Virus record (IMG/VR): IMGVR_UViG_3300036760_000522
Span: 124,001-188,000 of that record
Length of the DNA: 64,000 nucleotides
Direction: 5' to 3' (one strand)
In this document: piece by piece, positions 2,740-20,317 of the stretch
Numbering within the stretch: the first letter of the stretch is position 1
Layout of the letters: the number at the start of each line of letters is the position of its first letter
Notes under the pieces: generated by a model
Databases searched by the model: none
What the model was told of the DNA's origin: nothing
Seen by the model: only the letters and a program-made list of their open reading frames with translations
Position numbers and translations under genes: made by a program

Positions 2740-3954
2740 GTGAAAACCAAAAACCTCATCTCAGATGGCGTCGTCGCTAGTGCAATGGCGCACTGGCGAT
2801 TCAACACTTTCGGCGCCCAGTCATTTCCGGTCGAAACCATATCCCCGTACGTCGTCAACATTGCCGACAATTCCTTCGTCTATCCTGCACACGAAATCTT
2901 GTTGGCTGGACGATACAACAGCTCATTTGAAGCTGAAATAATCATTGGTGGAGATGGCAGCGGAGCAGGTGTTGGGTCTAGCGCTGCTAGTGGCTGGCAC
3001 ATTTTGCCTGGGATTGCAGGCTTCGTAGCAGGCGGTACCAATACGCTAACAGTGCTGGGGGAGTACCAAGGGGTCTCGATTGCTGTAGAGCACGGCAGTC
3101 AGGACGTTTACCGCACCAGCAACTCTACTACGTTTTCAGTGGTCTCAACCGTCGCCCCAACGTCACACGGTCTTTCAGCCCTAGCCTTATCCCGCTCCAC
3201 TTTTCCCGGGCGTATCATAGTGGGCGTGTACGGCGCAGGCACCACACAAAACCGCATCTCTACAAGTGACAATGGCGGTGCATCTTGGACGATTCGCGCC
3301 GTCCCTACTTCGTGGAACGTGAGCCACATCTTCCACATCATACCCAGCCACACGTCGGATCTGATAGTGCTCGCCACGGGCAGCCTGTTGGGGTCCATTC
3401 TGCGTTCGACAGACAACGGAATCACTTGGTCTTCCATCACGCTGCCTTCTGAGTTCTCGAGCAGCTTCTTCGGCTGGGACACCTACCAAGTCGCGTGGAG
3501 TCCCGTCTGGCGGCAGTACCTGCTCTTGGACGGGTCTTTGCAGATGGCAGTTTCACCCGACGGCCTAAGCTGGACTGTCATACCTGGGTCTTCGGCTTCT
3601 GCTTACGCCAATATCATCGAGCCGTCAGGTACTGATCGCGGAAGACTTCTGGCTGCAAACGGTTCCGTGTTTTGCCTAGCTGCAAACACAAAGGGGCTTT
3701 CCAATGACTTGTACGTTCGCGGGGGTCTTTGGACAGCAAACGCCGGCAGAACCTGGAATTTCTCTGCGTTCGGAAATGCCAACAACAGCACGTCTTACCA
3801 TCTTCGTGGGATCAAGCCCTGGAGAAACGGATTTGCTGCGTTCAGTCAGTACGGAGTCTACTTGTCCGGATCCTTGAAATTCGAACATCCGACGTATGAC
3901 TTCGGCAGCTTACAAGCTGGTTTGCCCCACAACGACTTGGGTTACAACTTCTAA
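2740..3954 (+). CDS. Asp-box/BNR beta-propeller protein (putative virion or receptor-binding)
   Basis: SDNGGASW, STDNGITW, SPDGLSW, TANAGRTW repeats. Confidence 0.75.
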   Translation: MKTKNLISDGVVASAMAHWRFNTFGAQSFPVETISPYVVNIADNSFVYPAHEILLAGRYNSSFEAEIIIGGDGSGAGVGSSAASGWHILPGIAGFVAGGTNTLTVLGEYQGVSIAVEHGSQDVYRTSNSTTFSVVSTVAPTSHGLSALALSRSTFPGRIIVGVYGAGTTQNRISTSDNGGASWTIRAVPTSWNVSHIFHIIPSHTSDLIVLATGSLLGSILRSTDNGITWSSITLPSEFSSSFFGWDTYQVAWSPVWRQYLLLDGSLQMAVSPDGLSWTVIPGSSASAYANIIEPSGTDRGRLLAANGSVFCLAANTKGLSNDLYVRGGLWTANAGRTWNFSAFGNANNSTSYHLRGIKPWRNGFAAFSQYGVYLSGSLKFEHPTYDFGSLQAGLPHNDLGYNF

Positions 3955-5210
3955 GGCAACCACATACGAGGGTCGACAGGGTTTGTGGCCCCGTACGCAG
4001 GTATGGCGTAGGCGTCACTTGCGAATACAGCTGGATCGTTCACGCCTGGGTAGTAAACGTGAATTCGAGATCCGTCATTCAACAATGAGACAGGATTCGG
4101 GTTCGAGTCGTTGTCCGTGAACGGATAGTCTGATTGATCGAAAAATGGTGCAGTCAAGGAAGTTAGGAACTGCCAGAGGCGTCCCCCGTTGCGGCTGATG
4201 AAAACCTGTGGCGGTGTACCGTACATGCCCAGCATGATTTGCCCTTCCGGATCAACCTTCTCAATGACGTTGAAGCTCAACCCAACAGCAGTGGTTGCCG
4301 ATGTTGGAAGGTTGGCATCCAGAACTCGACACGTAGTCCACGTAGCTCCGCTATCGTCGGAGTAGTACTGCTCCTCGCCGTCAGCGTCGGACCCCATGAT
4401 CCATCGGTTAAACATCGACGAGTACTGGATCTCCACATACGGAGAAGGAGTCAACGAAAGTGCCATGACAGCCCAAGTGACACCACCGTCCAACGAGCGA
4501 TACGTTGCACCAAATGACGTTCCAACCATCTGAACCGTACCTGTGTCGTCAATTTCGTAGTTGACGACTTCAAAACTTGGAATGGGTGTTGTGGTGATAG
4601 CAGTAAAGCCAGTTGAAGTGGCAGTCGCACCTGAAGCGCGGCAAATACTAGCGGTTCCACCAGTATTGTTGTTCACCAAATAATAGTAGAAGTTGCCGGC
4701 CCGACGCAAGGCAAGGGCTTCACCAACTGTGACTGAATGACCGGGGGGCGGAGCAAGCCAGTTATCCGAACTAGCCGTCGGAATAGCAGCCCCGTAAGGC
4801 AAAGCCATGATGCGAGGAATCGACACCGAGCTTTTTCCGAGCACCCACAAAAAGCTGGTGTAGTAATGTGCCGAAGATACGTGTGTGTACGTGATGGTAC
4901 CTGTTGTCTTGGTAGGAAAAATCGTCGTTTCGTTGAAGCGACACAGTGTGTTGAGGTAGCTCGTAGCGTCTACAAAGGTGTTTCCACTGACAGCCAGTCC
5001 GCTGTTGTACGGACTGGTAATCGAACCGCCGCGAAACATGACGCGCACGAGTCGCCGCCCTGCGCCCACAAAGACGGTTCCCCGCCTAAGTAACGAACCG
5101 TGGATCCCAGTAGTTTCCGCGCCAAAATCCAAATGGCCGGCGAACCGCCAATTGAGCGCGGCCTGAAGGTAACTGGGGTTCCGCAGATTGATCTGGTGTA
5201 GTTCCGGCAT
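3951..5210 (-). CDS. Asp-box/BNR beta-propeller protein
   Basis: SLDGGVTW, SDDSGATW, SRNGGRLW repeats. Confidence 0.75.
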   Translation of the reverse strand: MPELHQINLRNPSYLQAALNWRFAGHLDFGAETTGIHGSLLRRGTVFVGAGRRLVRVMFRGGSITSPYNSGLAVSGNTFVDATSYLNTLCRFNETTIFPTKTTGTITYTHVSSAHYYTSFLWVLGKSSVSIPRIMALPYGAAIPTASSDNWLAPPPGHSVTVGEALALRRAGNFYYYLVNNNTGGTASICRASGATATSTGFTAITTTPIPSFEVVNYEIDDTGTVQMVGTSFGATYRSLDGGVTWAVMALSLTPSPYVEIQYSSMFNRWIMGSDADGEEQYYSDDSGATWTTCRVLDANLPTSATTAVGLSFNVIEKVDPEGQIMLGMYGTPPQVFISRNGGRLWQFLTSLTAPFFDQSDYPFTDNDSNPNPVSLLNDGSRIHVYYPGVNDPAVFASDAYAIPAYGATNPVDPRMWLP

Positions 5211-5257: not shown

Positions 5258-5671
5258 TCAGCCGCGTTCGTTCTGGGCGACGACGCGTTTCACGAGTTCA
5301 ATGAGTTGACTGCCAGGCTCGTTGTTGCGCAGCCTGATCTCTGTCTTGATGCCGCGGAACCCAATTTCGTCCCAAAAAATGCCTCCCAATGTGGTGCCTT
5401 GAAAAGTGTCGGTCAGGTAGCCCACGACGAGCTCGACCTCAAGGTCTCGAACGCTTGTTCCTTTGCATCTGACTTCAGTGTAGTCACGGCTTTGGTCCAC
5501 CTCTCCGCGATCGGCCTTGTACCGAGCGGGGATGGCTTTCAGAATGTCTTTGCCGAGTGCGAGGCCCCATTCCCTGGCAACCTCCTCTATTGAACCAGCA
5601 TTGGACGCCGCAGTCTTGGTGGCGACCGCATGAACTCGTTGCAGTACACGTCGATCATAATCGTACATCAT
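5258..5671 (-). CDS. Hypothetical protein with N-terminal YDYDRR motif
   Basis: GAGGAG RBS; co-oriented with neighbours in an operon. Confidence 0.7.
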   Translation of the reverse strand: MMYDYDRRVLQRVHAVATKTAASNAGSIEEVAREWGLALGKDILKAIPARYKADRGEVDQSRDYTEVRCKGTSVRDLEVELVVGYLTDTFQGTTLGGIFWDEIGFRGIKTEIRLRNNEPGSQLIELVKRVVAQNERG

Positions 5672-5678
5672 GTTCTCC

Positions 5679-6008
5679 TCACTTAAGCTTCAGTGACGTA
5701 AACACTCGATTGGCGTCATCGTACGCTTCAGTCAGGGCTGGTATGCTCTGACGAACACGGTCCAACGCTTTCGCCAAATAATCTAGCTGTTGCTCTGGAG
5801 CGTACTTGTCCAAGCCTGGTAACCCTGTCACGGCCTGGTCTTCCCGTATTGCGGCGTAAAGCTCAACCAAAGCAGAGGCTGCCGCAGGGAGGTGTTTTGC
5901 TGCACGATCAAGATCGTCCACGACACGAACGATCTTGATCAGATTGTCCGAGTACGTACCCGACCGCACTGCGGCATTGCGACGATCGTAGCTGTAGGTT
6001 GCTGACAT
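5679..6008 (-). CDS. Hypothetical protein with N-terminal YSYDRR motif
   Basis: ATG at 6008 directly follows the topoisomerase stop and has a GAGGA RBS. Confidence 0.7.
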   Translation of the reverse strand: MSATYSYDRRNAAVRSGTYSDNLIKIVRVVDDLDRAAKHLPAAASALVELYAAIREDQAVTGLPGLDKYAPEQQLDYLAKALDRVRQSIPALTEAYDDANRVFTSLKLK

Positions 6009-6009
6009 G

Positions 6010-7464
6010 TCAATTTCCTCGAATCGGTCCAAAACCTCTGGGCAACCGTGACGCCGACATCTGCGACGACGTCTTTTTGGCGTTGAGGTAGCGGGCCACC
6101 ACTCGTTGTGTAGCACTCAACGGTGATCGGCGTAAAGCGCTGCCCTCATCTGTCTGCCACGCGGGATCCAAATCGTTTTTGGTGATGTTCTCGTCTTGAA
6201 ACAGTTTACGGTAAAGCGCAGTAGCGATACCGGATCGTCGGAACTCAGGTTCCACCTGAACCATTTTGATTTGGTAGCGACCTTGGTAGAGTGACCAGCT
6301 GAGCCAACCAACACGCTCATCGCGGCCAGGAACCCAAACGGAAATCCACCCATCGTGCTGACCCCGAGCGATGGAATCGTTACCGGTTTCGAAATACAGC
6401 GACTTCTCGAAGCCCTGTCGATCATAGGCCCACGTGATGAGATTCTTCCCACCGGCCTTGACGAGGTAACGTAGAATCACCTCGTCACTTTTGCTAGACT
6501 CAGTCGACACGATAGCAATCTTGTTGCCGCGCCAAACAGCGACCTTCTCGCTGCCCAATCCAGACTTGTACAACGAATGCCCGTCTGTCGAAAGCATCCG
6601 GCCATCTGCGGTCTCTTTCTTGATGAACGCGGCAACAACACGCTTGTCCGAAGTGGTCAAACCCGCGAACCGCATTACGAGTTCTGCCAACTTCATCTTG
6701 GAATAGACAGACCCGTCTTTGAGGAACGTCTCCTCGAGCCCCGGAACCAGGTACATGGACTTCAGAGTCGACGCTTCGTGACCGACAGCTTTAGCCGTCT
6801 CATCGAGTGCGTGTTCGAACTCCTTCTTGAGCTGTGCGTCTCGCTTCTTCTTGTCTTCCGACAGTTCACCACTTTTTGAACGGATTGCGCGGAGCTCATC
6901 TTGCATGAGTTTGTTTGCATGAAATCCGCGTAAATCTTTCGCTGTGATCTCGAACTTCTTGAGGTACGCGTTGACGTGACTTGCGGTGATCTTGCCAGAG
7001 CCGTGGCAGAAAATCGAATCCTCGTCGCAGCCCTCGTAAGCGTCTCGGAGAGCGGCCAAAATAGCCTTGTCGCTCACGATCTTCTTCTGTTTGACGCCAG
7101 ACTTCCCGACGTACTTGATAGTCGCCTTGCTGCGACCAAAGCTGATGTGACTCTTCTGCCACCCGGTGACGCCCACATGCCCGTCGTCGGCGCTTGTTGC
7201 ATTCCCAACACGTTCGTAAGTGTGATCTATCAAAGCCACGGCTAGCGAAGTCAGAGCCGTATCAGGATCGCTAGACTTCAGATCCTTCCGTACCTGGCTT
7301 CGTAAGCCTTTGATTTTACCGCGCAATTTCTCGAGTCGTGCTGCCTTTTCGTTGTTTCGACGCGCGATCTGTCGCTCCGAGTACTGATAGACGACCGTTC
7401 CGGTATCCAGCTTCTTTTTGGACTTGTACCGGGCCGCGACGCGAGCAGAAGGGGTCACTATCAA
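6010..7464 (-). CDS. DNA topoisomerase IB fused to a C-terminal GNAT-like domain
   Basis: Topoisomerase IB catalytic motifs ERVGN, YVGKSG, KDLRGFHAN, VGH..TLKSMY. Acetyl-CoA motif VQVEPEFRRSGIATALY. Confidence 0.85.
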   Translation of the reverse strand: MIVTPSARVAARYKSKKKLDTGTVVYQYSERQIARRNNEKAARLEKLRGKIKGLRSQVRKDLKSSDPDTALTSLAVALIDHTYERVGNATSADDGHVGVTGWQKSHISFGRSKATIKYVGKSGVKQKKIVSDKAILAALRDAYEGCDEDSIFCHGSGKITASHVNAYLKKFEITAKDLRGFHANKLMQDELRAIRSKSGELSEDKKKRDAQLKKEFEHALDETAKAVGHEASTLKSMYLVPGLEETFLKDGSVYSKMKLAELVMRFAGLTTSDKRVVAAFIKKETADGRMLSTDGHSLYKSGLGSEKVAVWRGNKIAIVSTESSKSDEVILRYLVKAGGKNLITWAYDRQGFEKSLYFETGNDSIARGQHDGWISVWVPGRDERVGWLSWSLYQGRYQIKMVQVEPEFRRSGIATALYRKLFQDENITKNDLDPAWQTDEGSALRRSPLSATQRVVARYLNAKKTSSQMSASRLPRGFGPIRGN

Positions 7465-7855: not shown

Positions 7856-8260
7856 ATGAACACTTCACGCTTTCCGAACTTCCGGGAGTTCATGCTCCTC
7901 GCTAGCGAAATCGACATCAGCCGGCCTCCAGGGTTCTTGTCACAAACCTACTCTGCACGCCGATACGTCGAGTTGTATGACCTCGCCGAACGGGCTTGGA
8001 ACAGTTGCGGCGACCAAGGACCGAGGATTGATTCCATGGTCGTTGCCGTGACCAACGAGTTCATTTTCAACGAAGAAGCGGGCAAGCTCGTCGCCATGAC
8101 AGACACCCGCTTTACCTGTGGTGCACTGCTGCGCTTCAAAGGACCTGTGATAGGCTTTCCCCTCTTTGCGGTCCACCTCACAGGTACGGGCATGGACGCC
8201 TACGTCGAGTCAAAATATTGGTGGACCTACGTCCTACCACTTCAACCCAAATACCTCTGA
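7856..8260 (+). CDS. Hypothetical protein
   Basis: ORF with tight operon spacing. Confidence 0.55.
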   Translation: MNTSRFPNFREFMLLASEIDISRPPGFLSQTYSARRYVELYDLAERAWNSCGDQGPRIDSMVVAVTNEFIFNEEAGKLVAMTDTRFTCGALLRFKGPVIGFPLFAVHLTGTGMDAYVESKYWWTYVLPLQPKYL

Positions 8261-8286
8261 AAATCTCAAACACGAAAGAACCCACC

Positions 8287-9174
8287 ATGCGCGCCTTTGC
8301 CTCATCGTCGATCACATTCGGTCTCGTTTCGATCCCCGTCAAACTTTACGTCTCGGCCTCGGACGATCGCCCACACCTCAACATGCTCACCAAAGACGGG
8401 CACCGCGTCAAACAACAGATGCTCGATGCGGAAACCAGCCTACCTGTCGAACACAGTGAGTTGGATCGCGGCTACGAAGTCAGCAAGGGACAGTTCGTCC
8501 GAATCACCAAAGAGGAGCTTGCGTCGCTCGAGACCAAGGCCAACCAGGTTGTCGAGATCTTGGAATTCGTACCCATCGGCCATGTGGACTTCGTACAGTC
8601 TGAGAAGACCTACTACCTCAGTCCTGACAAGGGGGGAGACAAGGGCTACACGTTGCTCGCGGAAACCTTGGCCGTACAACAGGTGCAAGCAATCGCCAGA
8701 TGGACCAACCGCGGCAAGCAACACCTGGTCACCGTCCGAACCTACCGTGGAGGACTCGCACTCCAGGTGCTCTTCTACTCAAGTGAGGTACGCGACTTCG
8801 AGGAGGTTAAGGCCGCCAAAGTCGAAATCTCACAAGCTGAACGTGACTTGGCCAACCAACTCGTAGCGCACCTAACAAAGCCATCCTCTGACATCAGCCA
8901 GTACACAGATGAGTGCACGGCAACGCTGATGCGACTTGTCGACGCCAAAGTCGCCGGTCGTGAGATCGAAATCCCCCAAGCCTCCGGACAACCCGCCGTA
9001 CTCGACCTTTTTGATGCTCTCAAACGCAGCCTCGAAATCTCGGCGCAAAATACACCGAAACTCGCAAACGGGACACCGTCTGAAAAAATCAACGGCTCCT
9101 CACCGTCTCATGACAAGAACACCAACAAACCTAAATCAACCAAAAAATCAAAATCACACGCGCGTACGACTTGA
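8287..9174 (+). CDS. ku: Ku DNA end-binding protein
   Basis: ITFGLVSIPVKLY, RGYEVSKGQFV, EKTYYLSPDKGGDKGYTLL, DLFDALKRSL, basic tail. Confidence 0.95.
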   Translation: MRAFASSSITFGLVSIPVKLYVSASDDRPHLNMLTKDGHRVKQQMLDAETSLPVEHSELDRGYEVSKGQFVRITKEELASLETKANQVVEILEFVPIGHVDFVQSEKTYYLSPDKGGDKGYTLLAETLAVQQVQAIARWTNRGKQHLVTVRTYRGGLALQVLFYSSEVRDFEEVKAAKVEISQAERDLANQLVAHLTKPSSDISQYTDECTATLMRLVDAKVAGREIEIPQASGQPAVLDLFDALKRSLEISAQNTPKLANGTPSEKINGSSPSHDKNTNKPKSTKKSKSHARTT

Positions 9175-9199
9175 CACCCGTCGATAACATGTCTACTTT
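9171..9199 (+). promoter_or_regulatory. Sigma70 promoter
   Basis: TTGACA-N17-TACTTT. Confidence 0.65.
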
Positions 9200-9268
9200 T
9201 CGGACCGCGTTCAATCTTCAAAAGGAAGCTCACCTCCTCAAAGTGTGAGACTCGAACGCGGTCCGAAA
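9198..9268. repeat. 15-bp perfect inverted repeat enclosing two small hairpins
   Basis: TTTCGGACCGCGTTC (9198-9212) / GAACGCGGTCCGAAA (9254-9268). Confidence 0.85.
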
Positions 9269-9300
9269 CTCCCTGGAGTTCCAGGGAAGAGAAATTAAAG

Positions 9301-9897
9301 ATGCCGAAAGGTCATGAAAAACTCGCAGTCGCAGTCGTAGACGAATTGGTGAGACGCCTCACCAATTCCAGTTCCTCCGCGTCCGCGAGCCAAGAAACAC
9401 CACAAGAAGCAAAGCCTGTTCAACGTCGCGGACGAAAAAAAGCAGTAGTAACTGCTTCGCCCCCTGTTGCCTCAGAAAACGGAGAAGCCGCCAAACGCGG
9501 TCCCGGAAGACCGAAGACAAAGTCCCTCGCTGCGGCGTCTTCAGTTGCAGCGAAACCAGACGGTCGCAAGCGCGGTCGAAAGTTGTCCGATATCGAGGGA
9601 TCCGCTGCGTCAAAAACTCCAGGTCGAAAGCGTGCAGTTGATCCTGAAACGAACGGGCATTCAAAGAAATCGGGAGCGTTGTACAACCTGATGGTGCAAG
9701 CCATGTTGGCAGAAGGCAACAAGCCCATGAAAGCCACGGACGTTCTCGAGGCTCTTGCTAGCCAGGGACACAAAGTCACGGCTAGCAACCCGCGTAACTA
9801 CGTGAGCTTCCTACTGTCGAAGCGAGAAGACCTTTTCACCAAGGTCTCACACGGAGTCTATCAAGCAAAAAAAGGGACGAGGTCGGCGGAGGCGTAA
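9301..9897 (+). CDS. Histone-like basic DNA-binding protein (AT-hook plus C-terminal winged HTH)
   Basis: KRGPGRPK, RRGRKK, RKRGRK. The C-terminus KPMKATDVLEAL...YVSFLLSK..LFTKVSHGVY is wHTH-like. Confidence 0.75.
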   Translation: MPKGHEKLAVAVVDELVRRLTNSSSSASASQETPQEAKPVQRRGRKKAVVTASPPVASENGEAAKRGPGRPKTKSLAAASSVAAKPDGRKRGRKLSDIEGSAASKTPGRKRAVDPETNGHSKKSGALYNLMVQAMLAEGNKPMKATDVLEALASQGHKVTASNPRNYVSFLLSKREDLFTKVSHGVYQAKKGTRSAEA

Positions 9898-10009
9898 CCC
9901 CACCCACCGATCTAGAACCCAAACCGACGCCCCTCACAATCGACGAAGCGATGTCTATGTGGGGCGTCGGTGGCGGGGAAGAACCTGCGAAAGATGACCC
10001 TTTCGCCGT

Positions 10010-10522
10010 ATGAAAAGCCAAAGGCGACTCACACTCGCGGCTGAGTATGGGGAGAACATCCGGCGTACAACACGCGTAGATTGCCGCAGAAGTTGCTCCG
10101 CGTGTTGTAGTCACCCAGTCATCATCACTCTTGACGAAGCTGACGAGATCTACGAGTTTCTGCGTAGCAGAAGGCTCTGGACAGCTGCATTGAAGATCAG
10201 TCTTGAACAGACCTCGAAGCTCACTGCCGGTTTGAGCTTCGAGGTCTGGTTGTTAGCAGAGATTCAGTGTCCCCTGCTGGACGGCAGCGATCTTTGTAGC
10301 GTCTATCCAAAACGCCCCTTTCAATGCGCCGTCACATTCTCACGTGATCGTCGAGACTGTGAGCCGACGGTTCTCGGTCCTGGCTTGATCCCAAAGCTCG
10401 AAATCCTCGAGAAGCTTGAGAAGCTCGAAACTGATGCCGGGAATTACCGGAACATTTCGACGAGGCTACCGCTTGCAGCAGCTCTTTTGATCGCAGACAG
10501 TCGCCATTCTCATGAATCGTGA
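10010..10522 (+). CDS. YkgJ-family cysteine cluster protein
   Basis: CRRSCSACC...CPLL...CSVYPKRPFQC. Confidence 0.9.
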   Translation: MKSQRRLTLAAEYGENIRRTTRVDCRRSCSACCSHPVIITLDEADEIYEFLRSRRLWTAALKISLEQTSKLTAGLSFEVWLLAEIQCPLLDGSDLCSVYPKRPFQCAVTFSRDRRDCEPTVLGPGLIPKLEILEKLEKLETDAGNYRNISTRLPLAAALLIADSRHSHES

Positions 10523-10817
10523 CTTCAATCAGTGTTGTATCTGTCTGCGGGCTTGTCGAGGACCTGAAGCCCACGTCATCAATCTCACGCGCGACGAACA
10601 AGCGTACCTCAAAAAGTCCACGGGCATAACGACGCCCGCCAGTTTCATTTATTGTCAACCTTGTTGGCGTGTCCTGTCTGATCCTGTAACCGGGATACAG
10701 TTTTTCACAAACCACTTCCAAAAGCTTGTGAAAGCGATGGGTGTTGCCAAGCCAGAGGTGCATGCCAACGCGTACCGGGACAGACTTTACAAATTGATGC
10801 GGAGGAACAGCAACTGA
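10512..10817 (+). CDS. Hypothetical Zn-binding protein
   Basis: CCIC...CQPC; overlaps both neighbours. Confidence 0.65.
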   Translation: MNRDFNQCCICLRACRGPEAHVINLTRDEQAYLKKSTGITTPASFIYCQPCWRVLSDPVTGIQFFTNHFQKLVKAMGVAKPEVHANAYRDRLYKLMRRNSN

Positions 10818-11947
10818 TGATCGACAAGAATCGACTACGAGACATCAAGCGCATCATCACACACGCGCACTGCTCGGATGGGGTAGCGTCTGCCATGATC
10901 CTCCTCGACGCATTGCCTGAAGCGACAGTGGAGTTCGTCCAGTACGGCACAAAAGAGCACAAAGAGCTCGAGGCCACACCAAACACAATCTTTTGCGACT
11001 TTTCCCCTCCTAGAGAACGTGTCGACGAGTTCTTGGCAGCTGAGACTATCGTGCTCGACCACCACAAAGGTGCCCCCGTAGAACGATTCGTGGAAGCAGG
11101 CCTGGGGGACTTCGTCCCAGAAACCCCAGGAGTCTCTGGTGCCAGTCTCGCCTACGCGGACGTTTGGGTGCCCCTCAGAAACCCAAACGATACGCCGAAT
11201 TTCTTTACACGCCTAGCAGTGCTCGCTGCAACCTACGACACTTGGCAAACAGACAGCCAGGACTGGGACGAAGCCTGTGATGTGGCTGAGTGCCTAAGAT
11301 TCTGGCCGTGGTCGTATATCGAAGACAAAGTCAAAAAATCGTCTTTCTTCGGTTCTTCCCCGCCACCACAGACGCTGACATGGGAGGATCTGTTCGAGGT
11401 CGGTCCCCACCTCAGCAAACTGTCAGATGTGGACTCCGTGACACTGTCCAAAAACGCTTTTCGTGTCACCAGCAAGCGGGAGCGGAAGGTCGCCATCGTT
11501 CCAACGACAGGTGCCAAGCTAAACAAGGTGGCACACCATGATCAAGGCAATGCAGATCTCGTCATAGGCTTCAGTTACAACATCGAACCGGACTCCGTAA
11601 AGCAAATCTGTTCATGCCGGACCAAAACAGATTTCGATTGTCACGCGTTCGCGCTTGCCATGGGCGGTGGAGGACACACCAAAGCCGCAGGGTTTTCAAT
11701 ACCTGTGGATGTAACCCACAAAGACCCGATAACTGTCATCCGACGCATGTTGGGACTCTACGAAGAAGTTGAAGACCTGTGGAAGGCCAAGATCAAAGAG
11801 CCACACTTCACAGAGAATTATCCAAGACCCCAACAAGCTTTCGCGCATCTGCTACTAGTACAGATACCGGGGCTCCGGAATGCACCCGAAGTGCTCAAAC
11901 TGTTTTTCCCAGAGGGAACTCCCGATCCAAGTCACCAGAACAAATGA
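10817..11947 (+). CDS. DHH-family phosphoesterase with DHHA1 domain
   Basis: HAHCSDG, CDFS, LDHH, SGASLA, GGGGHTKAAG. Confidence 0.92.
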   Translation: MIDKNRLRDIKRIITHAHCSDGVASAMILLDALPEATVEFVQYGTKEHKELEATPNTIFCDFSPPRERVDEFLAAETIVLDHHKGAPVERFVEAGLGDFVPETPGVSGASLAYADVWVPLRNPNDTPNFFTRLAVLAATYDTWQTDSQDWDEACDVAECLRFWPWSYIEDKVKKSSFFGSSPPPQTLTWEDLFEVGPHLSKLSDVDSVTLSKNAFRVTSKRERKVAIVPTTGAKLNKVAHHDQGNADLVIGFSYNIEPDSVKQICSCRTKTDFDCHAFALAMGGGGHTKAAGFSIPVDVTHKDPITVIRRMLGLYEEVEDLWKAKIKEPHFTENYPRPQQAFAHLLLVQIPGLRNAPEVLKLFFPEGTPDPSHQNK

Positions 11948-12113
11948 TAGAGAGACGGCGGAGCACCCGATCTGTCTTTCCCTGTTGCAACGCTTCCTGC
12001 AACATCCTCTGTCGAGGGTCATTGATCTTGCGAGCCCGCTCGAGTGCTTGACGAGCGAGACGGTTCCAGTCGACAACGCTTCGTGTCATTCTCTCAACAT
12101 CTGACAGGTTCAA
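11895..12113 (-). CDS. Hypothetical protein
   Basis: Helical-looking ORF convergent with the DHH gene. Confidence 0.35.
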   Translation of the reverse strand: MNLSDVERMTRSVVDWNRLARQALERARKINDPRQRMLQEALQQGKTDRVLRRLSIICSGDLDREFPLGKTV

Positions 12114-12210
12114 ACTTGACTAAAGGCGCAAAGCTACCATTGAGTGGCGAGACTAACTCAGTCATTTCCTATTGGCAACTTCGAAGATCCGTCCTTTTTA
12201 AGACAAAGAT

Positions 12211-12621
12211 TCATTGAGCAAACGGCGGCTGTCCGCGAAAAGCTGTATAGAACGGAATGCTCGCAGCCATTTGGTTTATCTGTGACATCTCCTCGTCCCC
12301 TTGATACGTCGTTGGGAGACGCGGGGTCGTTGCGGCAAGTGTTCGCAAGTGAGCGTCGCTTGTCACCCGCAAAAGGTCTTCTCTCGCGTGCTCATCCCTC
12401 TGCAAAATGAAAACGATCATATCGTCATCCAGATTGTCGAGAGTACAGATCCCTCCGGTGCCGTCGGGGGCTATCCCTTCGACCCAAACGTTGTTGTTGC
12501 GGTCTAGGTCGCACTTCGTCGGCTGAGGACCTGGATCTTCTTCAGGAAGGCAACAATCAGTTGGGATCGAGTCTTCGAGCGTGGGTAACGTGTTGCAGTC
12601 TTCGAGCGTGGGTAGTGACAT
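12211..12621 (-). CDS. Hypothetical acidic Cys-containing protein
   Basis: GAGG RBS; N-terminal LPTLED occurs twice. Confidence 0.65.
   Translation of the reverse strand: MSLPTLEDCNTLPTLEDSIPTDCCLPEEDPGPQPTKCDLDRNNNVWVEGIAPDGTGGICTLDNLDDDMIVFILQRDEHAREDLLRVTSDAHLRTLAATTPRLPTTYQGDEEMSQINQMAASIPFYTAFRGQPPFAQ
12570..12614. repeat. 18-bp direct repeat, 27-bp period, in frame
   Basis: AGTCTTCGAGCGTGGGTA at 12570-12587 and 12597-12614. Confidence 0.85.
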
Positions 12622-12651
12622 GGGTGGATCCTCTCATAACACACGCTCAAT

Positions 12652-13398
12652 GTGACAGCAAGTCTCCGCGTTGCAGCAGTTCAGTTTGCGCCGGCCTTCG
12701 AGCGACCGAACCGGAATCTCACGACAGCTGTCCAGTTGGTTACTCAAGCCATCCGTGAAGGAGCAAAGCTCATCACGTTGCCTGAGCTGTGCACAACAGG
12801 CTACAGCTTCATGGACTACGAACATGCAGCCAGATTTGCGGAGGACTTGTCCGGACCTGAGACGTCAAGCTCCATGGCGATTTTCAAAGAGATCTGCCAT
12901 CGCTACGATGTCGCCATCGCCTACGGCACCCCAGAACGTGATCCAGGAACACACAAGCTCTACAACAGTCAAGTCTTGATCACGCCGAATCTCTGGTGTG
13001 TTTTCCGCAAAATTAACCTGTGGGCCAATGACTACCTTTGGGCGACGGAGGGATCGGAACCGCCTGCCATTCTTGAGTTTGGTGGTCGGAGAGTCGGAAC
13101 TCTGATCTGTCGGGACATCCGAGATAAGTCCGACGACGTGGCCAGCTTCTACGAAAAGGGTGACGCGGACGTCGTTTGTTTCAGTTCCAACTTTGGCAAA
13201 GGAGGATTTCCAGCGGTCAGTTGGATCCGGTTTGCCAAGAACAACAAGGTGTGGCTTCTCGTTTCGAATCGCTACGGACTCGAACAGAACAACGACTTTG
13301 GACACGGCGGGATCTGCATCGTCAACCCCGAAGGACAAGTCTCCTGTCGAGGACTCAAGTGGAACCAACCATGTGTCGTGACAGCCGACATCCCGTGA
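12652..13398 (+). CDS. Carbon-nitrogen hydrolase (nitrilase superfamily)
   Basis: RVAAVQF and the catalytic triad in LPELCTTGY, FRK, LICRD. Confidence 0.93.
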   Translation: MTASLRVAAVQFAPAFERPNRNLTTAVQLVTQAIREGAKLITLPELCTTGYSFMDYEHAARFAEDLSGPETSSSMAIFKEICHRYDVAIAYGTPERDPGTHKLYNSQVLITPNLWCVFRKINLWANDYLWATEGSEPPAILEFGGRRVGTLICRDIRDKSDDVASFYEKGDADVVCFSSNFGKGGFPAVSWIRFAKNNKVWLLVSNRYGLEQNNDFGHGGICIVNPEGQVSCRGLKWNQPCVVTADIP

Positions 13399-13399
13399 C

Positions 13400-13825
13400 T
13401 CACAGAAATTGCTGCTCCCAAGTTTTGATTTTTGGGCCTTTGTACCGTCGATGTGTGATGGGTGTTTCCGACGCTAGCATCACATACGTTGGGACTTGCT
13501 TGGGCTTAATACCGTCGCGGTACTTGACCTCGTAGTGATCATCTTTCCACACAATGATCGCGCGACCCTCTTGGTGGAGCATAGTCTCCAAAACGTCAAG
13601 CGAAACGTCGGAACGGAAACGCACGAAATTGATCGTCGCCAGCGAAGTGACTCCGTAAACATACAATGACAAGAATCGCTGTTCCGCATTGGCGGCGTGT
13701 ATCATGATGTGTTCCACCACCTTGTGTGGAGTCTCATAAGACCTGATCTCGACAGCCGCGTAAGCCACTGCGTTCTCACGTCTCAAACGGCGAGCGGTGA
13801 ACCACTTGCGTATCCGGGTCAACAT
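13400..13825 (-). CDS. Hypothetical protein
   Basis: Last gene of the minus-strand replication cluster. Confidence 0.55.
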   Translation of the reverse strand: MLTRIRKWFTARRLRRENAVAYAAVEIRSYETPHKVVEHIMIHAANAEQRFLSLYVYGVTSLATINFVRFRSDVSLDVLETMLHQEGRAIIVWKDDHYEVKYRDGIKPKQVPTYVMLASETPITHRRYKGPKIKTWEQQFL

Positions 13826-14876
13826 CCAATGGATAGGAACGTACAGAAGTAGGTCCGTGTAACCAAACCCGCCAATGGACTTTTGCGTAAACCGCCCACA
13901 CACTGCCGGACTCTCTGGAAGATACCGAGTAGGAATCGATCTTCACACGGCCCGCACTCGGGGAAAGCGAGACAGTTTGCGCACCAACTACAGGCAATAC
14001 ACGGTTCAGCGGATTTTTCTGTAGCAAGACCGATACAGCTTCCGGCGGAGCAATCCAGAATCCAGGGCCAGAATCCGAACTTACGGAAGGTAAGCCAGGT
14101 ATGACCGAGATCAAACGCGCCATTTCCCGCAACACGCCAGCGGCTAAGCTGGCGCGTGTGTTGGACGCGTGTTGGTGCACGACAGACAAAGCAAGTAAGT
14201 CGCTGATCCCGAAATCCGTGCCGGAGACGGTCTGGCCGCTCACAGAGGGCTCTGTGTCAGGCTCAGTCGTGACCGGTTGGAGCCTAGACCAGAACTCCCT
14301 CAAAATGCCTCTGGCAGAGTCTAGGAGGGCGGTCGGGTCCAACTGTCCAATGGCTGTGGCGATAGCTTGCCGGCCATTTCTCGAGAGTATGAGTAGACGG
14401 GTATCGAGACCAGAAATTCCAAGACGGGCGGAAAAGAAGTCAATCGCGCCTTTCTCCCGCCCCCGATCAGAGAACCAGAGGGTTAGGGCTGCCTCTACCT
14501 CTGGTTTCAGCCTCGGAAGCCCGATGCCGAGCCTACCGTTCTCACGCATGACTCGAGGCTGTTCCTCGAGATAGGACGGATCTAGTGCTCCGATTGCGTA
14601 ACCTGTCTCGGTTGACGAGAGGATGATCCGATCGCCGGCCTGCAAAACCTCTTCGGCTAAGTACTGAGCCGTGATTTGAGGATCGTGAATGTCCTCACAC
14701 AGCTCTAACTGTCCTTGTATTTCCGTCGTGAGCTGCTCAAGTGATTTGGTTGCGGCTTCATACAGAAGGTACGGACGCGCCTTGAGTATCGATCGGGCTG
14801 CCAACAAATCCGGAGGAATCGGCCGGACAGTCATCGCAAGGGATCGTATCGGTGTTTCTTTCGACAATTGATCCAT
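13776..14876 (-). CDS. Hypothetical protein
   Basis: 366-aa ORF within the operon. Confidence 0.65.
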   Translation of the reverse strand: MDQLSKETPIRSLAMTVRPIPPDLLAARSILKARPYLLYEAATKSLEQLTTEIQGQLELCEDIHDPQITAQYLAEEVLQAGDRIILSSTETGYAIGALDPSYLEEQPRVMRENGRLGIGLPRLKPEVEAALTLWFSDRGREKGAIDFFSARLGISGLDTRLLILSRNGRQAIATAIGQLDPTALLDSARGILREFWSRLQPVTTEPDTEPSVSGQTVSGTDFGISDLLALSVVHQHASNTRASLAAGVLREMARLISVIPGLPSVSSDSGPGFWIAPPEAVSVLLQKNPLNRVLPVVGAQTVSLSPSAGRVKIDSYSVSSRESGSVWAVYAKVHWRVWLHGPTSVRSYPLDVDPDTQVVHRSPFET

Positions 14877-16410
14877 TACTGTCTCCTTCTAGCGACGACG
14901 CGTATCTGGCTCGAACACCGTCTCTTGAAATCGGATCGTACCCGATCCACTCGTGCAGCGCCTCAGCCTCACGAGAAAAAGCGCGTAGCAGCCTTGGTCT
15001 GTTGGTCAACGCCACTCCTACCTCATAAATGAGGTAGGAGTGCTTTAGGTAGGATTGCAACAAGGCGTCGTTGATAGATTGCTCGATCTCACTGCCTACA
15101 AGCCCGTGTGCGGCTTGCATCAGTTCGCTGCATTCTATGCTCGTGAGCTTCGAAGATGTGTGTTTGCGAAGATGGATATTCAGGATCTCCAGACATTCAG
15201 CAGGCGTTGGCGGACCAAAGAAAAACCGCTCATTACTGCGTCGAACGAAAGCAACAGGCAATGCTGCCATGTTGTTGACCGTGAATACAAAGCACAGCGG
15301 GGCTTTAGTCTCTTGTAGCCAGGTAGCGAACCGGGCATGCATACGCGAGGTAGTTCCCGCATCACTGTACGTCGATGACGGATCACCTGACAGGTTTCTT
15401 TCGGCTTCATCGATCCAAACCAAAGCAGGTGCAGACGCTTCCAGAATGTCAATTGCCTTGCGAACGTTCGATTCAGAATCCCCGAGTCCTCGTTCGCGTA
15501 AACGTCCGAAATCGAGTTCGAACAAGGGTAATTCCCAACAACCTGCAAGAGCGCGCACGGATAGACTTTTTCCACACCCCCAGAAACCAAGCAGGATCAA
15601 CCCGCGAGGCGGAACAAGTCCTTGTTTCTGCCCTTCAGGCGACCAAGTTGTTTTCTGATCCTGAGCCCACGATTTGAACCGATCGGCTCCGCCCAAATCA
15701 TCTAAAGACGCAACGTCTTTGACCAACGTCACAAGTCCGGTCGTCAGAAGGCGACGACTCTTCAGTTGAGTCACGTATTGCAGGTCAACCCGTGACTCGG
15801 GTACTGTAGAAGCAACGCTCTGACCAATGGCGGAACGGATCTCGTACGTCGACATGTCGCGAAACAGTGAAAGATCCGCAGGCGGCTCGACCTTGTGCTC
15901 TCGACAGATGCGGCCCACGAGGTTCTCCAGTCGCCGCTTGCTGATCCCCGGATCACGAACGACTTGAAGGTACCTTTCTAACGAACCCGGGATCGTGATC
16001 CTTGGTCCAAGAAAAATCACTGTCACACCAACCTTCGAAGCGTGGTTGCATACGTGAATGAGATCCAGGATCAGACGAACAATTAGCGCATCTCGAAACA
16101 GCCGCTCAGGATCTGTGAAAATCCAGTAACTCGCCTCCTGAACCAAAGGACGGATCTTTCTGAGAGCCTTGTCCGCGTCCTTTGTGGTTGGCTCAGCCTT
16201 GAAGGTCGTCGGCTCATGCCAACTTTTGAGCGCTGACACCAAGTTGACGAGGCCCATCGCCGGAGAGTAGAGATTGGCTTGCTCTGGTTTGTCCTTGAAA
16301 AGTTTCCCGAAATCTAACAGGAAACGATCTTCTTCGTCCGTCACGTAGTAGAGGAACCGGTTTCCCGCACATCGGTGGAAGTCCAGATCCGCTGACAAGC
16401 CAGTAGACAT
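14758..16410 (-). CDS. Ycf46/SpoVK-like AAA+ ATPase
   Basis: Walker A GFWGCGKS, Walker B LVWIDEAE, TVNN, RRSNERFF. Confidence 0.9.
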   Translation of the reverse strand: MSTGLSADLDFHRCAGNRFLYYVTDEEDRFLLDFGKLFKDKPEQANLYSPAMGLVNLVSALKSWHEPTTFKAEPTTKDADKALRKIRPLVQEASYWIFTDPERLFRDALIVRLILDLIHVCNHASKVGVTVIFLGPRITIPGSLERYLQVVRDPGISKRRLENLVGRICREHKVEPPADLSLFRDMSTYEIRSAIGQSVASTVPESRVDLQYVTQLKSRRLLTTGLVTLVKDVASLDDLGGADRFKSWAQDQKTTWSPEGQKQGLVPPRGLILLGFWGCGKSLSVRALAGCWELPLFELDFGRLRERGLGDSESNVRKAIDILEASAPALVWIDEAERNLSGDPSSTYSDAGTTSRMHARFATWLQETKAPLCFVFTVNNMAALPVAFVRRSNERFFFGPPTPAECLEILNIHLRKHTSSKLTSIECSELMQAAHGLVGSEIEQSINDALLQSYLKHSYLIYEVGVALTNRPRLLRAFSREAEALHEWIGYDPISRDGVRARYASSLEGDSNGSIVERNTDTIPCDDCPADSSGFVGSPIDTQGASVPSV

Positions 16411-16439
16411 CCTTCAGTTCCCAGTCCCAAAACACCGAA

Positions 16440-16970
16440 TCACTGAAACCTAATCTTGGCTCCAGGTTTCACAATCCGCTCATTGCTCTTGGTGGGGGCT
16501 TCCCACGGATCAATCTTGACGCTCGGCGTTGTTGGCGGCGTGCCGATCATTTGGCCTTGCCGCACGGGAGTGTTGTAACTAGGGATCCGTGCAACCTGGT
16601 CAAGGTCGGTCATTGGAACCTGCACAACAGGTTCAGGTTCCGAAACGTCAGTACGCACAATTGGTTCAGGAATCGAGATAGTCGTCGTGGAAGGGACTTC
16701 CCTAGGATCCACCCACTCAGTTCTGGGCTGCTCGACCTCGATAAAATGCTTGGCCGTGATTTCAGAGTACCGGCTATCGTCTTGGGACATGCGAGACACC
16801 CCTGTAAAGAGACGGCTCTCCCAGGAGAGGACGCGCTGATCAAATCTGGATCTTCCGTGTTGGCTGCGAGAGCACTCCGCCTGCTGACAACGAGAACAAA
16901 ACTGCAACATGAAGTCCTCGTGAGGGACATTGTGGTCGTTGCAAAGCCGGAGGTAGTCTTGCTTCGACAT
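16440..16970 (-). CDS. Hypothetical protein (Cys-containing N-terminus, Pro-rich C-terminus)
   Basis: C..FCSRC...C; lies directly downstream of polA. Confidence 0.7.
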   Translation of the reverse strand: MSKQDYLRLCNDHNVPHEDFMLQFCSRCQQAECSRSQHGRSRFDQRVLSWESRLFTGVSRMSQDDSRYSEITAKHFIEVEQPRTEWVDPREVPSTTTISIPEPIVRTDVSEPEPVVQVPMTDLDQVARIPSYNTPVRQGQMIGTPPTTPSVKIDPWEAPTKSNERIVKPGAKIRFQ

Positions 16971-16974
16971 GGCG

Positions 16975-19899: not shown

Positions 19900-20317
19900 C
19901 GCGTTCGATCACCAAAATGTAGACGTCTAGCTTCCAGAGGTCGAGAGCCCGCGTCAATGTCTCCTGCACGTCTCCTACAACACCGCCGGGCATGTAACAC
20001 GGAGGGCGTTGTCGATGCTCAGCTTGGCAACGCTTGTCGTGAAAAGGACAGGTTCGTTTTTGTGAGCACGTCTTTGCTTCAAGAGGTAGCTTTTTGAGCG
20101 ATCCAACTGGCGGCAGACCGAGTGCCTCTGACAAGGGTCGACTCCACCCCTGAAGAGCTTGTTCTAAGACTTCAAAATCAATCTTGGTGACCAAACCTTC
20201 GTAGGTAGTCCCACGCAATGAATCCCACTCTGTCTCCCAAATACCGTTGTGTGCTTGGACCAACAACGCTGAAATTTCGCCTCGCTCATGTGTCGGGATT
20301 TTGACTTGCCGGGCCAT
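19889..20317 (-). CDS. Hypothetical protein (Cys cluster)
   Basis: Overlaps both neighbours in the replication operon. Confidence 0.7.
   Translation of the reverse strand: MARQVKIPTHERGEISALLVQAHNGIWETEWDSLRGTTYEGLVTKIDFEVLEQALQGWSRPLSEALGLPPVGSLKKLPLEAKTCSQKRTCPFHDKRCQAEHRQRPPCYMPGGVVGDVQETLTRALDLWKLDVYILVIERDGI

Follow-up and report, generated by a model that had tools for sequence, protein, structure and literature searches.

A portable terminal peptide tag on a predicted type IB topoisomerase–acetyltransferase-like fusion protein of a huge phage

Several described systems use short peptides or protein fusions to bring varied enzymes to a viral head or protein shell. In phage T4, the internal proteins IPI-III and Alt, otherwise unrelated and some of them anti-defence or host-modifying enzymes, share only a short terminal capsid targeting sequence (PMC3012670). 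The T4 sequence is found at N-termini only and is removed by the prohead protease. The polyvalent proteins of phages and conjugative elements (Iyer, Burroughs, Anand, de Souza, Aravind 2017; PMC5512222) carry several effector-type domains in one polypeptide, including RimI-like GNAT, 2H phosphoesterase, Pol-beta nucleotidyltransferase, helicase and metallopeptidase-like domains, are encoded among late genes, are tied to the head by covalent fusion to MuF or portal domains, and are predicted to be delivered together with the DNA. Encapsulin cargo-loading peptides and microcompartment encapsulation peptides are short terminal peptides on flexible linkers, at either terminus, that direct diverse enzymes into a protein shell; the microcompartment peptides are amphipathic helices, and the encapsulin shell has the HK97 fold. 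Type IB topoisomerases (TopIB) occur in poxviruses (vaccinia and variola) and in bacteria such as Deinococcus radiodurans, and the poxvirus enzyme is packaged in virions.

In this study, a 64,000-nt stretch (the window; positions 124,001 to 188,000 of IMG/VR record IMGVR_UViG_3300036760_000522) of a 301.5-kb phage genome was analysed using genetic code 11. The initial annotation had described one gene as a complete TopIB catalytic set followed by an unrecognised domain of about 90 aa and a GNAT-like domain, bracketed by RVxARY-type motifs with a weaker copy at the first domain junction, and this description proved to be correct. The features are listed in Table 1. The start codon is TTG 7464 or GTG 7458, and no clear Shine-Dalgarno sequence precedes it.

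Table 1. Features of the fusion gene and the two genes that follow it (window positions; residues numbered in the 484-aa protein)
Position	Strand	Residues	Feature	Observation
6010..7464	-	1-484	Whole gene: TopIB, small domain and GNAT-like domain in one fusion protein (P0001)	Stop codon TGA at 6010-6012; same protein on record as 482 aa starting at GTG 7458 (P0002)
7426..7446	-	7-13	N-terminal tag ARVAARY	Matrix score 16.1; followed by KSKKK and a beta-hairpin (to residue ~28) conserved in all TopIB homologues; predicted short helix (residues 5-11) of low confidence, not packed on the core
6715..7410	-	~19-250	Type IB topoisomerase catalytic domain	Catalytic codons R85 7210-7212, K121 7102-7104, R179 6928-6930, H229 6778-6780, Y238 6751-6753
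6667..6693	-	258-266	Junction tag KLAELVMRF (ELVMRF at 261-266), degenerate	Aligns with the C-terminal tag of stand-alone TopIBs (for example KAAAVAERF and KAAALVLRY); predicted free helix, pLDDT below 50
6415..6657	-	~270-350	Small alpha/beta domain, fold not assigned	AlphaFold2 pLDDT ~90; conserved in the homologues P0003-P0006, P0122 and P0123
6130..6402	-	~355-445	GNAT-like acetyltransferase core	RRSGIA motif at 409-414
6085..6108	-	453-460	C-terminal tag QRVVARYL	24 residues before the protein end; best matrix score in the genome, 20.0; predicted isolated helix, pLDDT below 50
6013..6084	-	461-484	Tail after the tag	Appears to be the remnant of a third fused open reading frame; the 94%-identical relative P0003 has ~70 extra coiled-coil-like residues here
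5679..6008	-		Next gene in the operon	ATG at 6008, one base after the TopIB stop codon; N-terminus carries a second terminal motif (TYSYDRR)
5258..5671	-		Following gene	N-terminus MMYDYDRR (second terminal motif)

The N-terminal part of the protein matched Pfam Topoisom_I (PF01028) at 87.9 bits against a cut-off of 23.7 (E = 8.4e-25, residues 35-235) and at 89.6 bits in a scan of the genome. Alignment with variola (2h7f) and D. radiodurans TopIB showed that R85, K121, R179, H229 and Y238 correspond to R130, K167, R223, H265 and Y274 of the poxvirus enzyme, and these five residues were invariant in 43 homologues. The AlphaFold2 model had a mean pLDDT of 86, and Foldseek matched it to variola TopIB (3igc/2h7f; best E = 2e-12, TM 0.67) and to D. 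radiodurans TopIB (7e-12). Unlike the poxvirus and bacterial enzymes, the phage protein lacks the separate N-terminal DNA-binding domain of about 80 aa, and only about 28 residues, the tag helix plus a basic beta-hairpin, precede the catalytic domain. This is a minimal variant, which is not grounds for exclusion from the family.

In the C-terminal half, residues ~271-345 form the small alpha/beta domain, which always travels together with the GNAT-like domain; no structural match covered it in searches in which it was not folded and searched on its own. For residues ~354-444, Pfam Acetyltransf_1 scored 21.9 bits against a cut-off of 20.7 but covered only profile positions 28-86, other GNAT models fell below their cut-offs, and the NCBIfam RimI model scored 14 bits against 86. 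VIA-align gave Z 9.1 with 78-88 aligned residues, and Z 8-9.1, rmsd 2.5-3.5 Å and 72-89 aligned residues against dozens of GNATs over model residues 105-195; every top hit was a GNAT, and the ESM Atlas neighbours were RimI-like GNATs. However, the model had only moderate confidence (pLDDT 68, 7 sequences), and the usual N-terminal arm is not clearly present. In the RRSGIA motif, which fits the acetyl-CoA binding pattern Q/R-x-x-G-x-G/A, the R, G and A were invariant across the 7 homologues.

The short motifs were found not to be a chance feature. The strict pattern RV[AV]xR[YF] occurred 7 times in the genome against 0.3 in shuffled sequences, and all 7 lay within about 30 aa of a protein end. 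A scoring matrix built only from the C-termini of TopIB homologues on other contigs gave 11 hits at a score of at least 12 against 1.1 in shuffles, with 9 terminal against 0.2 (binomial P = 1.7e-4). There were 16 hits against 1.4 in a 485-kb relative (LR745208) and 49 against 1.5 in 31 related IMG/VR loci, 34 of them terminal (P ~ 1e-12). As a negative control, the cultured jumbo phage Tunturi_5 (308.7 kb, 58% GC), which has related head genes (portal ~38-40% identical), gave 1 hit against 0.9 expected; no cultured tag-bearing phage was found. Fifty-one proteins of the genome studied here are shared with LR745208 but absent from Tunturi_5. Off-frame translation of this GC-rich genome gave a background higher than shuffling (4 against 12 hits per 1e5 positions); the terminal position, not the raw count, is the strongest statistic. 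The enrichment at protein termini and at the junctions of fused modules, genome-wide and clade-wide, passes the test that had been set for the motif beforehand.

The consensus of the motif is LAxRVAxR(Y/F)L, about 10 residues predicted to form an amphipathic helix. It was carried by 52 of 86 TopIB homologues just after the catalytic core and by 17 of 63 homologues of the 2H phosphoesterase at 2-15 residues from the C-terminus, and the N-terminal copy was conserved as RVAARYKxKKK in 89 TopIB homologues. Other carriers included a C39-like peptidase, a poly(A)-polymerase fusion and many small proteins of unknown function, and several proteins carried tags at both ends or in tandem. A 99-aa protein at genome positions 122640-122939 has its tag in the N-terminal region. 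All-against-all BLASTP revealed nothing shared between carriers beyond the tag, and the idea that they are paralogues was rejected. A repeat or recombination boundary at the DNA level was also rejected, since synonymous codons differ between copies and only the coding frame is conserved. Pfam and PHROGs searches with about 30 carriers returned mostly no family. The second terminal motif, Y-x-Y-D-R-R, was not enriched in the relatives' loci and is specific to this lineage. Literature searches for the motif strings and for TopIB in jumbo phages found no description of the tag.

In relatives, the TopIB module and the acetyltransferase-like module (small domain plus GNAT) occur as separate tagged genes (P0122, the ~270-aa TopIBs) and in the reverse order (P0004-P0006), indicating that the protein is a gene fusion that kept its tags. 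Relatives add HD, HAD-like, HExxH-bearing, Cys-rich and poly(A) polymerase domains, although a Pfam search of the fusion partners of TopIB homologues returned only HD and a weak metallopeptidase hit.

In about 20 related loci the TopIB gene lies inside the head and packaging module. Fifteen of these have the large terminase gene directly upstream, ending at or overlapping the TopIB start, and the portal, the protein encoded after the portal (p311), the prohead protease and the scaffold follow. In two lineages (related locus L069 and LR745208), TopIB is fused to the N-terminal module of p311, and p311 homologues and a ~130-aa protein encoded just before the terminase genes carry the tag. In contrast, in the genome studied here and in its closest relatives the gene lies beside Ku, DNA polymerase A, DnaB and other helicases. 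Searches of this genome with Pfam models for portals (SPP1, HK97-type and T4), MuF, Peptidase_S78 and Gp23 gave no match, and Peptidase_S77 gave only a sub-threshold 13.6 bits. The portal was identified by tblastn with the annotated portals of Tunturi_5 and phage G, and a prohead protease was found with phrog_18299 (E = 7e-13). An ESM Atlas feature search with p311 gave no usable hit. The head-module proteins of this genome comprise the portal, large terminase, major capsid protein, scaffold, p207, the p217 paralogues, p220 and p311. The scaffold, prohead protease and major capsid protein carry no tag, and many carriers are scattered through the genome.

The analysis itself establishes that the gene is a fusion of two units that are independent elsewhere, a predicted minimal (~260 aa) type IB topoisomerase and a small domain plus a RimI-like, GNAT-like domain, that each unit kept its own copy of a portable tag, and that in this clade the tag is a protein-level short linear motif, predicted as a free amphipathic helix on a flexible tether, at the N- or C-terminus of many otherwise unrelated proteins. 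What follows is inferred. The tag would be a docking or address peptide bringing a varied set of proteins to one common, multivalent partner, most likely a component of the head-assembly or DNA-packaging machinery, so that tagged proteins would be loaded into, or held at, the capsid, as T4 internal proteins are loaded through their capsid targeting sequence. In this view, the TopIB part would relax DNA during packaging or on entry, the GNAT part would acetylate a protein target, and junction copies would be relics of fusions between neighbouring tagged genes. We give this reading a probability of about 0.45. A link to the head is plausible but unproven; no partner has been identified, and a complex prediction of the HK97-like major capsid protein with residues 436-484 of the fusion protein gave no verdict, counting neither for nor against binding.

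Compared with the T4 sequence, the tag likewise is all that its unrelated carriers share, but it also occurs at C-termini, is sometimes doubled, and no conserved cleavage pattern flanks it. Compared with the polyvalent proteins, two or more effector-type domains are likewise joined and the domain types overlap, namely the tagged types GNAT, 2H phosphoesterase and Pol-beta nucleotidyltransferase and also helicases and metallopeptidase-like domains, but a short non-covalent tag would take the place of the covalent fusion, no MuF domain was found, and the head context is seen in most relatives but not in this genome. There is no sequence similarity to the encapsulin and microcompartment peptides.

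The interpretation offered in the initial annotation, that the motifs are packaging or processing signals of a virion-internal polyprotein injected with the DNA to relax the incoming genome and acetylate a host target, is only partly supported: the motifs are real signals and a virion link is plausible, but proteolytic processing of a polyprotein is not supported. In favour of processing, copies lie exactly at module boundaries in many multi-domain relatives, a prohead protease is encoded, some relatives fuse TopIB to a domain bearing an HExxH motif, and processing of packaged proteins occurs in T4, phiKZ and SPN3US. However, most copies are at the true termini of single-domain proteins, where there is nothing to cut, no residue pattern typical of a scissile site was seen around the tags, the small domain and the GNAT domain have no tag between them, and junction copies are explained by fusion of separately tagged genes; cleavage is considered unlikely. 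Docking to a hub outside the virion, such as a replication, repair or transcription factory, a phage-built compartment or a host hub protein, with TopIB-GNAT acting on replicating phage DNA, is the strongest of the alternatives, although also rather unlikely. The neighbourhood of the gene in this genome, the many small carriers in non-structural regions and the untagged head proteins agree with it, whereas the commonest position of TopIB in the clade, between the large terminase and the portal, and the absence of the tag from the core replication enzymes do not. Ku cannot be the hub, because it is absent from five tag-bearing genomes.

A degron recognised by an AAA+ unfoldase or protease that clears a set of phage proteins at a defined time is the least likely alternative. 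The tag is terminal and accessible, as a degron must be, and AAA+ ATPases are encoded nearby in this and related genomes; however, doubled and tandem copies and retention at internal junctions fit avidity better than degradation, the same oriented motif works at both termini, and it sits on enzymes whose gene is translationally coupled to the large terminase gene. The N-terminal copy could be simply part of the TopIB fold or its DNA-binding surface, its resemblance to the others being coincidental or secondary, since it is far better conserved than any other copy, persists as LVIAKYKSKKK in TopIBs only 38% identical whose loci show no other tags, and adjoins KSKKK and a beta-hairpin modelled as part of the domain. 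This too is doubtful, because the helix itself is not packed on the core and the same six residues recur at the termini of unrelated proteins; moreover, it concerns one copy only and does not exclude the tag model, and that copy may also be an intrinsic TopIB element.

A more far-reaching reading, tentative but possible, is that a clade of uncultured huge phages (about 290-570 kb) uses one address tag at either end of a protein to load a large and fast-changing set of enzymes and small effectors into the capsid or onto the packaging motor, including a minimal TopIB whose gene, in most members, overlaps the end of the large terminase gene. This would be a cargo-loading code that can be read from sequence, and would point to a topoisomerase that works with the packaging motor on very long genomes. 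The conserved order of large terminase, TopIB and portal raises the separate question of whether packaging of 300-500 kb genomes needs a dedicated swivel enzyme. Most genes of huge phages have no assigned function, and a tag readable from sequence sorts 4-10% of them into one functional set. If the partner is a head component, the tag lists the proteins these phages carry into the cell with their DNA, including candidate anti-defence enzymes such as the Acb1-like 2H phosphoesterases, and would also offer a short peptide for loading foreign proteins into very large capsids.

The 301,550-bp IMG/VR virus record, with direct terminal repeats, is a jumbo phage; CheckV rated it 62% complete, although related records with terminal repeats are 448-513 kb, and either this phage is a smaller member of the clade or the completeness estimate is off. 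The window (bases 124001-188000) mainly holds DNA-metabolism genes, including those for a family-A DNA polymerase, a DnaB-like helicase, other helicases, an AAA ATPase, Ku, a DHH-family protein and a CN-hydrolase. ORFs were translated with genetic code 11 only. No obvious Shine-Dalgarno sequence was observed before either possible start of the TopIB-GNAT ORF, designated P0001. The features considered are listed below.

Coordinates of the TopIB-GNAT gene and of other features of the phage and its relatives
Feature	Sequence	Position	Strand	Remarks
TopIB-GNAT gene (P0001)	window	6010-7464	-	484 aa; start at TTG 7464 or GTG 7458
First gene downstream of TopIB-GNAT	window	5679-6008	-	ATG at 6008, one base after the TopIB-GNAT stop codon; N-terminal Y-x-Y-D-R-R
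Second gene downstream of TopIB-GNAT	window	5258-5671	-	N-terminal Y-x-Y-D-R-R
Last gene of the TopIB-GNAT operon	window	3951-5210	-	419 aa; weak BNR/Asp-box and sortilin-Vps10-like (beta-propeller) matches, both below the Pfam cut-offs
Ku homologue	window	8218-9174	+	likely start about 8284; Pfam Ku, E=1.8e-34; transcribed divergently from TopIB-GNAT
Gene just downstream of Ku	window	9301-9897	+	198-aa basic protein; several GRP/GRK (AT-hook-like) repeats and a C-terminal globular part; no Pfam match
Tagged 2H phosphoesterase	genome	37156-38040	-	weak, below-cut-off match to Acb1
Small protein	genome	118997-119566	+	N-terminal Y-x-Y-D-R-R
Small protein	genome	205451-205756	-	N-terminal Y-x-Y-D-R-R
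Gene directly downstream of the major capsid gene	genome	210172-212070	-	632 aa; matches to LAGLIDADG and HNH homing endonucleases and to a DNA methyltransferase
Head module	genome	212-226 kb	-
Protein encoded after the portal (p311)	genome	217675-218610	-	conserved charged N-terminal module
Tagged 2H phosphoesterase	LR745208	347195-348688	-	weak, below-cut-off match to Acb1
Conserved terminase-TopIB-portal gene order	related loci L049, L052-L058, L061-L067, L072, L073	about 8000-20000 (locus coordinates)

The domains of P0001 were searched separately. Pfam Topoisom_I matched residues 35-235 at E=8.4e-25, and alignment with variola and D. radiodurans TopIB placed the catalytic pentad at R85, K121, R179, H229 and Y238, all five of which are invariant in 43 homologues. 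An AlphaFold2 model of residues 1-272 had a mean pLDDT of 86 and matched variola TopIB (E=2e-12, TM 0.67), bacterial TopIB and human Top1. The usual N-terminal DNA-binding domain is missing, and only a basic beta-hairpin (KSKKK...VVYQY) remains. The C-terminal half was modelled with a pLDDT of 68 from 7 sequences. In this model, residues ~271-345 form a confident small alpha/beta domain that matched nothing, whereas residues ~354-444 superpose on many GNATs (Z up to 9.1, about 80 aligned residues). The latter contain the acetyl-CoA-type motif RRSGIA, scored 21.9 bits with Pfam Acetyltransf_1 against a cut-off of 20.7 and thus barely passed, and had RimI-like GNATs as the nearest ESM Atlas shapes. 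The initial annotation had described a complete TopIB catalytic set followed by an unrecognised domain and a GNAT-like domain, with RVxARY-like motifs at both ends and a weaker copy at the first domain junction; this description proved correct, and the three motif copies lie where it had placed them.

The strict pattern RV[AV]xR[YF] was found 7 times in 6 proteins of this genome, against 0.3 in shuffled sequences, and every copy lies within about 30 residues of a protein end. To avoid circularity, a scoring matrix was built only from the stretch following the catalytic core in TopIB homologues from other contigs; of 86 homologues, 52 have a copy there, with the consensus LAxRVAxR(Y/F)L. Searches with this matrix gave the following counts.

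Hits of the independent tag matrix at score >=12 in the genomes and loci examined
Data set	Hits	Shuffled	Terminal hits
This genome	11	1.1	9 (0.2 shuffled; P=1.7e-4)
LR745208 (485 kb, uncultured)	16	1.4	6
31 related IMG/VR loci	49	1.5	34 (P~1e-12)
Tunturi_5 (308.7 kb, 58% GC; control)	1	0.9	0

The control, Tunturiibacter phage Tunturi_5 (PP885688.1, loci L081-L098), is a cultured jumbo phage with related large terminase, portal, protease and capsid genes. It is the nearest cultured relative by its portal (about 38-40% identity) and infects an acidobacterium, which hints at the host range of the clade; it lacks both TopIB and the tag, making it a useful natural negative control. Off-frame translation of the present genome gave a third of the in-frame rate, but several of these off-frame hits sit right after a stop codon and look like small tagged genes missed by crude ORF calling. 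The tag was also found in a second enzyme family, as 17 of 63 homologues of the phage's 2H phosphoesterase carry it 2-15 residues from their C-terminus. The tagged 2H phosphoesterases of this phage and of LR745208 resemble the anti-CBASS Acb1 family only weakly, and are candidate enzymes for degrading cyclic-nucleotide or 2'-5' oligonucleotide signals.

Carriers of the tag share no similarity beyond it, and its codons vary at synonymous positions. AlphaFold2 predicted every copy as a short isolated helix of low confidence. The hydrophobic positions (-4, -3, 0, +1, +4 and +5) fall on one face of a helix, with arginines at -1 and +3, and several proteins carry the tag at both ends or twice in tandem.

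A second terminal motif, Y-x-Y-D-R-R, was observed at the N-terminus of four unrelated small proteins of this genome (about 0.1 expected), including the two genes directly downstream of TopIB-GNAT. The same motif replaces the RVAxRY tag at the C-terminus of some TopIB homologues (P0080, P0082 and P0116), a TYDRR ending occurs on a ~1100-aa helicase-like protein in the related locus L068, and an SYDFRK sits at the tag position of this genome's p311. The motif is not enriched in LR745208 or in the related loci.

More than 400 homologues of the TopIB core (60-70% identical) were found on contigs of up to 570 kb. Most are stand-alone enzymes of about 270 aa with an N-terminal and a C-terminal tag, and the weak ELVMRF of P0001 aligns with that C-terminal tag. 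The small-domain-plus-GNAT unit exists as a separate gene, as in the homologues P0122, which has an N-terminal tag, and P0123, which ends in AYTYGR; the same unit also occurs upstream of TopIB in the homologues P0004-P0006. Other relatives join TopIB to HD, HAD-like, HExxH-bearing, Cys-rich or poly(A)-polymerase modules, usually with a tag at the joint. The tail after the last tag in P0001 looks like the stump of a third ORF that is longer in the 94%-identical P0003. No conserved residue context that would mark a cleavage site was found. The simplest account is that tagged genes lying side by side fuse easily, because both products would go to the same place, and that the tags survive. The initial annotation had interpreted the motifs as packaging or processing signals of a virion-internal polyprotein, and this is only partly supported: the motifs are real signals and a link to the head is plausible, but the architecture is that of a gene fusion, and processing of a polyprotein is not supported.

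The head module of this genome contains the major capsid protein (phrog_2522, E=9e-51; Pfam Phage_capsid), a Q-rich scaffold-like protein, the prohead protease (phrog_18299, E=7e-13), the portal, which was identified by 40% identity to the annotated portal of Tunturi_5 and 25% to that of phage G, and the large terminase. In 15 related loci the large terminase gene ends at, or overlaps, the start of the TopIB gene. The conserved gene order is a ~130-aa tagged protein, a ~200-aa protein, the large terminase, TopIB, two or three paralogues of a 170-aa protein (p217), p140, the portal, p311 (310-1310 aa), p220, the prohead protease and the scaffold. The TopIB start overlaps the terminase stop in several loci, which suggests translational coupling. 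The ~130-aa protein, encoded two genes upstream of the large terminase, carries the tag at its N-terminus. In LR745208 and in the related loci L069-L071, TopIB lies after the portal and is fused there to the conserved N-terminal module of p311. So the ancestral home of this topoisomerase is the packaging and head cluster, and in the present genome and its closest kin it has moved next to Ku.

In an alignment of p311 with its homologues, the N-terminal module is conserved and highly charged (ATK..E.E..RLVRP.PK.KPPRHDRRR, then acidic DPD repeats, then NYKxVGGS) and is followed by the tag position; about half of the p311 homologues carry the tag right after this module. In relatives the protein grows to 875-1310 aa, with large inserts that have no Pfam match. 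This gene position is the one occupied by MuF/gp7-type head proteins in other phages, but no MuF domain was detected.

Ku is present in the closest relative (L044) but absent from five other tag-bearing huge-phage genomes, and it is excluded as the partner of the tag. Ku together with a topoisomerase in a phage with terminal repeats suggests end protection or repair of the incoming linear genome. Comparison of this genome and LR745208 with the tag-free Tunturi_5 left 51 candidate partner genes, including those of the head-module proteins p207, p217, p220, p311 and the scaffold.

Several points speak against a role of the tag at the head. The scaffold, protease and capsid protein have no tag, many carriers are scattered through the genome, and this copy of the gene has a replication and repair context. 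The single complex prediction, of the major capsid protein with the C-terminal tag region, is evidence neither for nor against binding. The N-terminal copy of TopIB is unusually well conserved and persists as LVIAKYKSKKK in distant TopIBs whose loci have no other tags; it may therefore also serve the enzyme itself. Other explanations remain possible. Docking to a cytoplasmic hub is doubtful but is the strongest of these, true processing is unlikely, and a degron is the least likely.

A shared terminal targeting peptide on diverse phage proteins is known from T4 and has analogues in encapsulins and microcompartments. In the literature searched, and only there, no paper was found to contain the motif strings or to discuss a type IB topoisomerase in jumbo phages. 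New here are the sequence, its use at either terminus, the scale, the clade, and the association with a topoisomerase whose gene, in most relatives, starts at or overlaps the end of the large terminase gene. As a further precedent, phage polyvalent proteins combine GNAT, 2H, Pol-beta and peptidase domains and are thought to be packaged through MuF or portal fusions (PMC5512222). The analysis itself demonstrates the clade-wide terminal tag and the fused nature of the gene, whereas DNA relaxation by the TopIB part, acetylation by the GNAT-like part, presence in the virion and binding to a common partner are inferred from sequence, predicted structure, gene position and precedent. Taken together, the best reading, inferred and not shown, is that these huge phages use the tag for docking to the head or packaging machinery.
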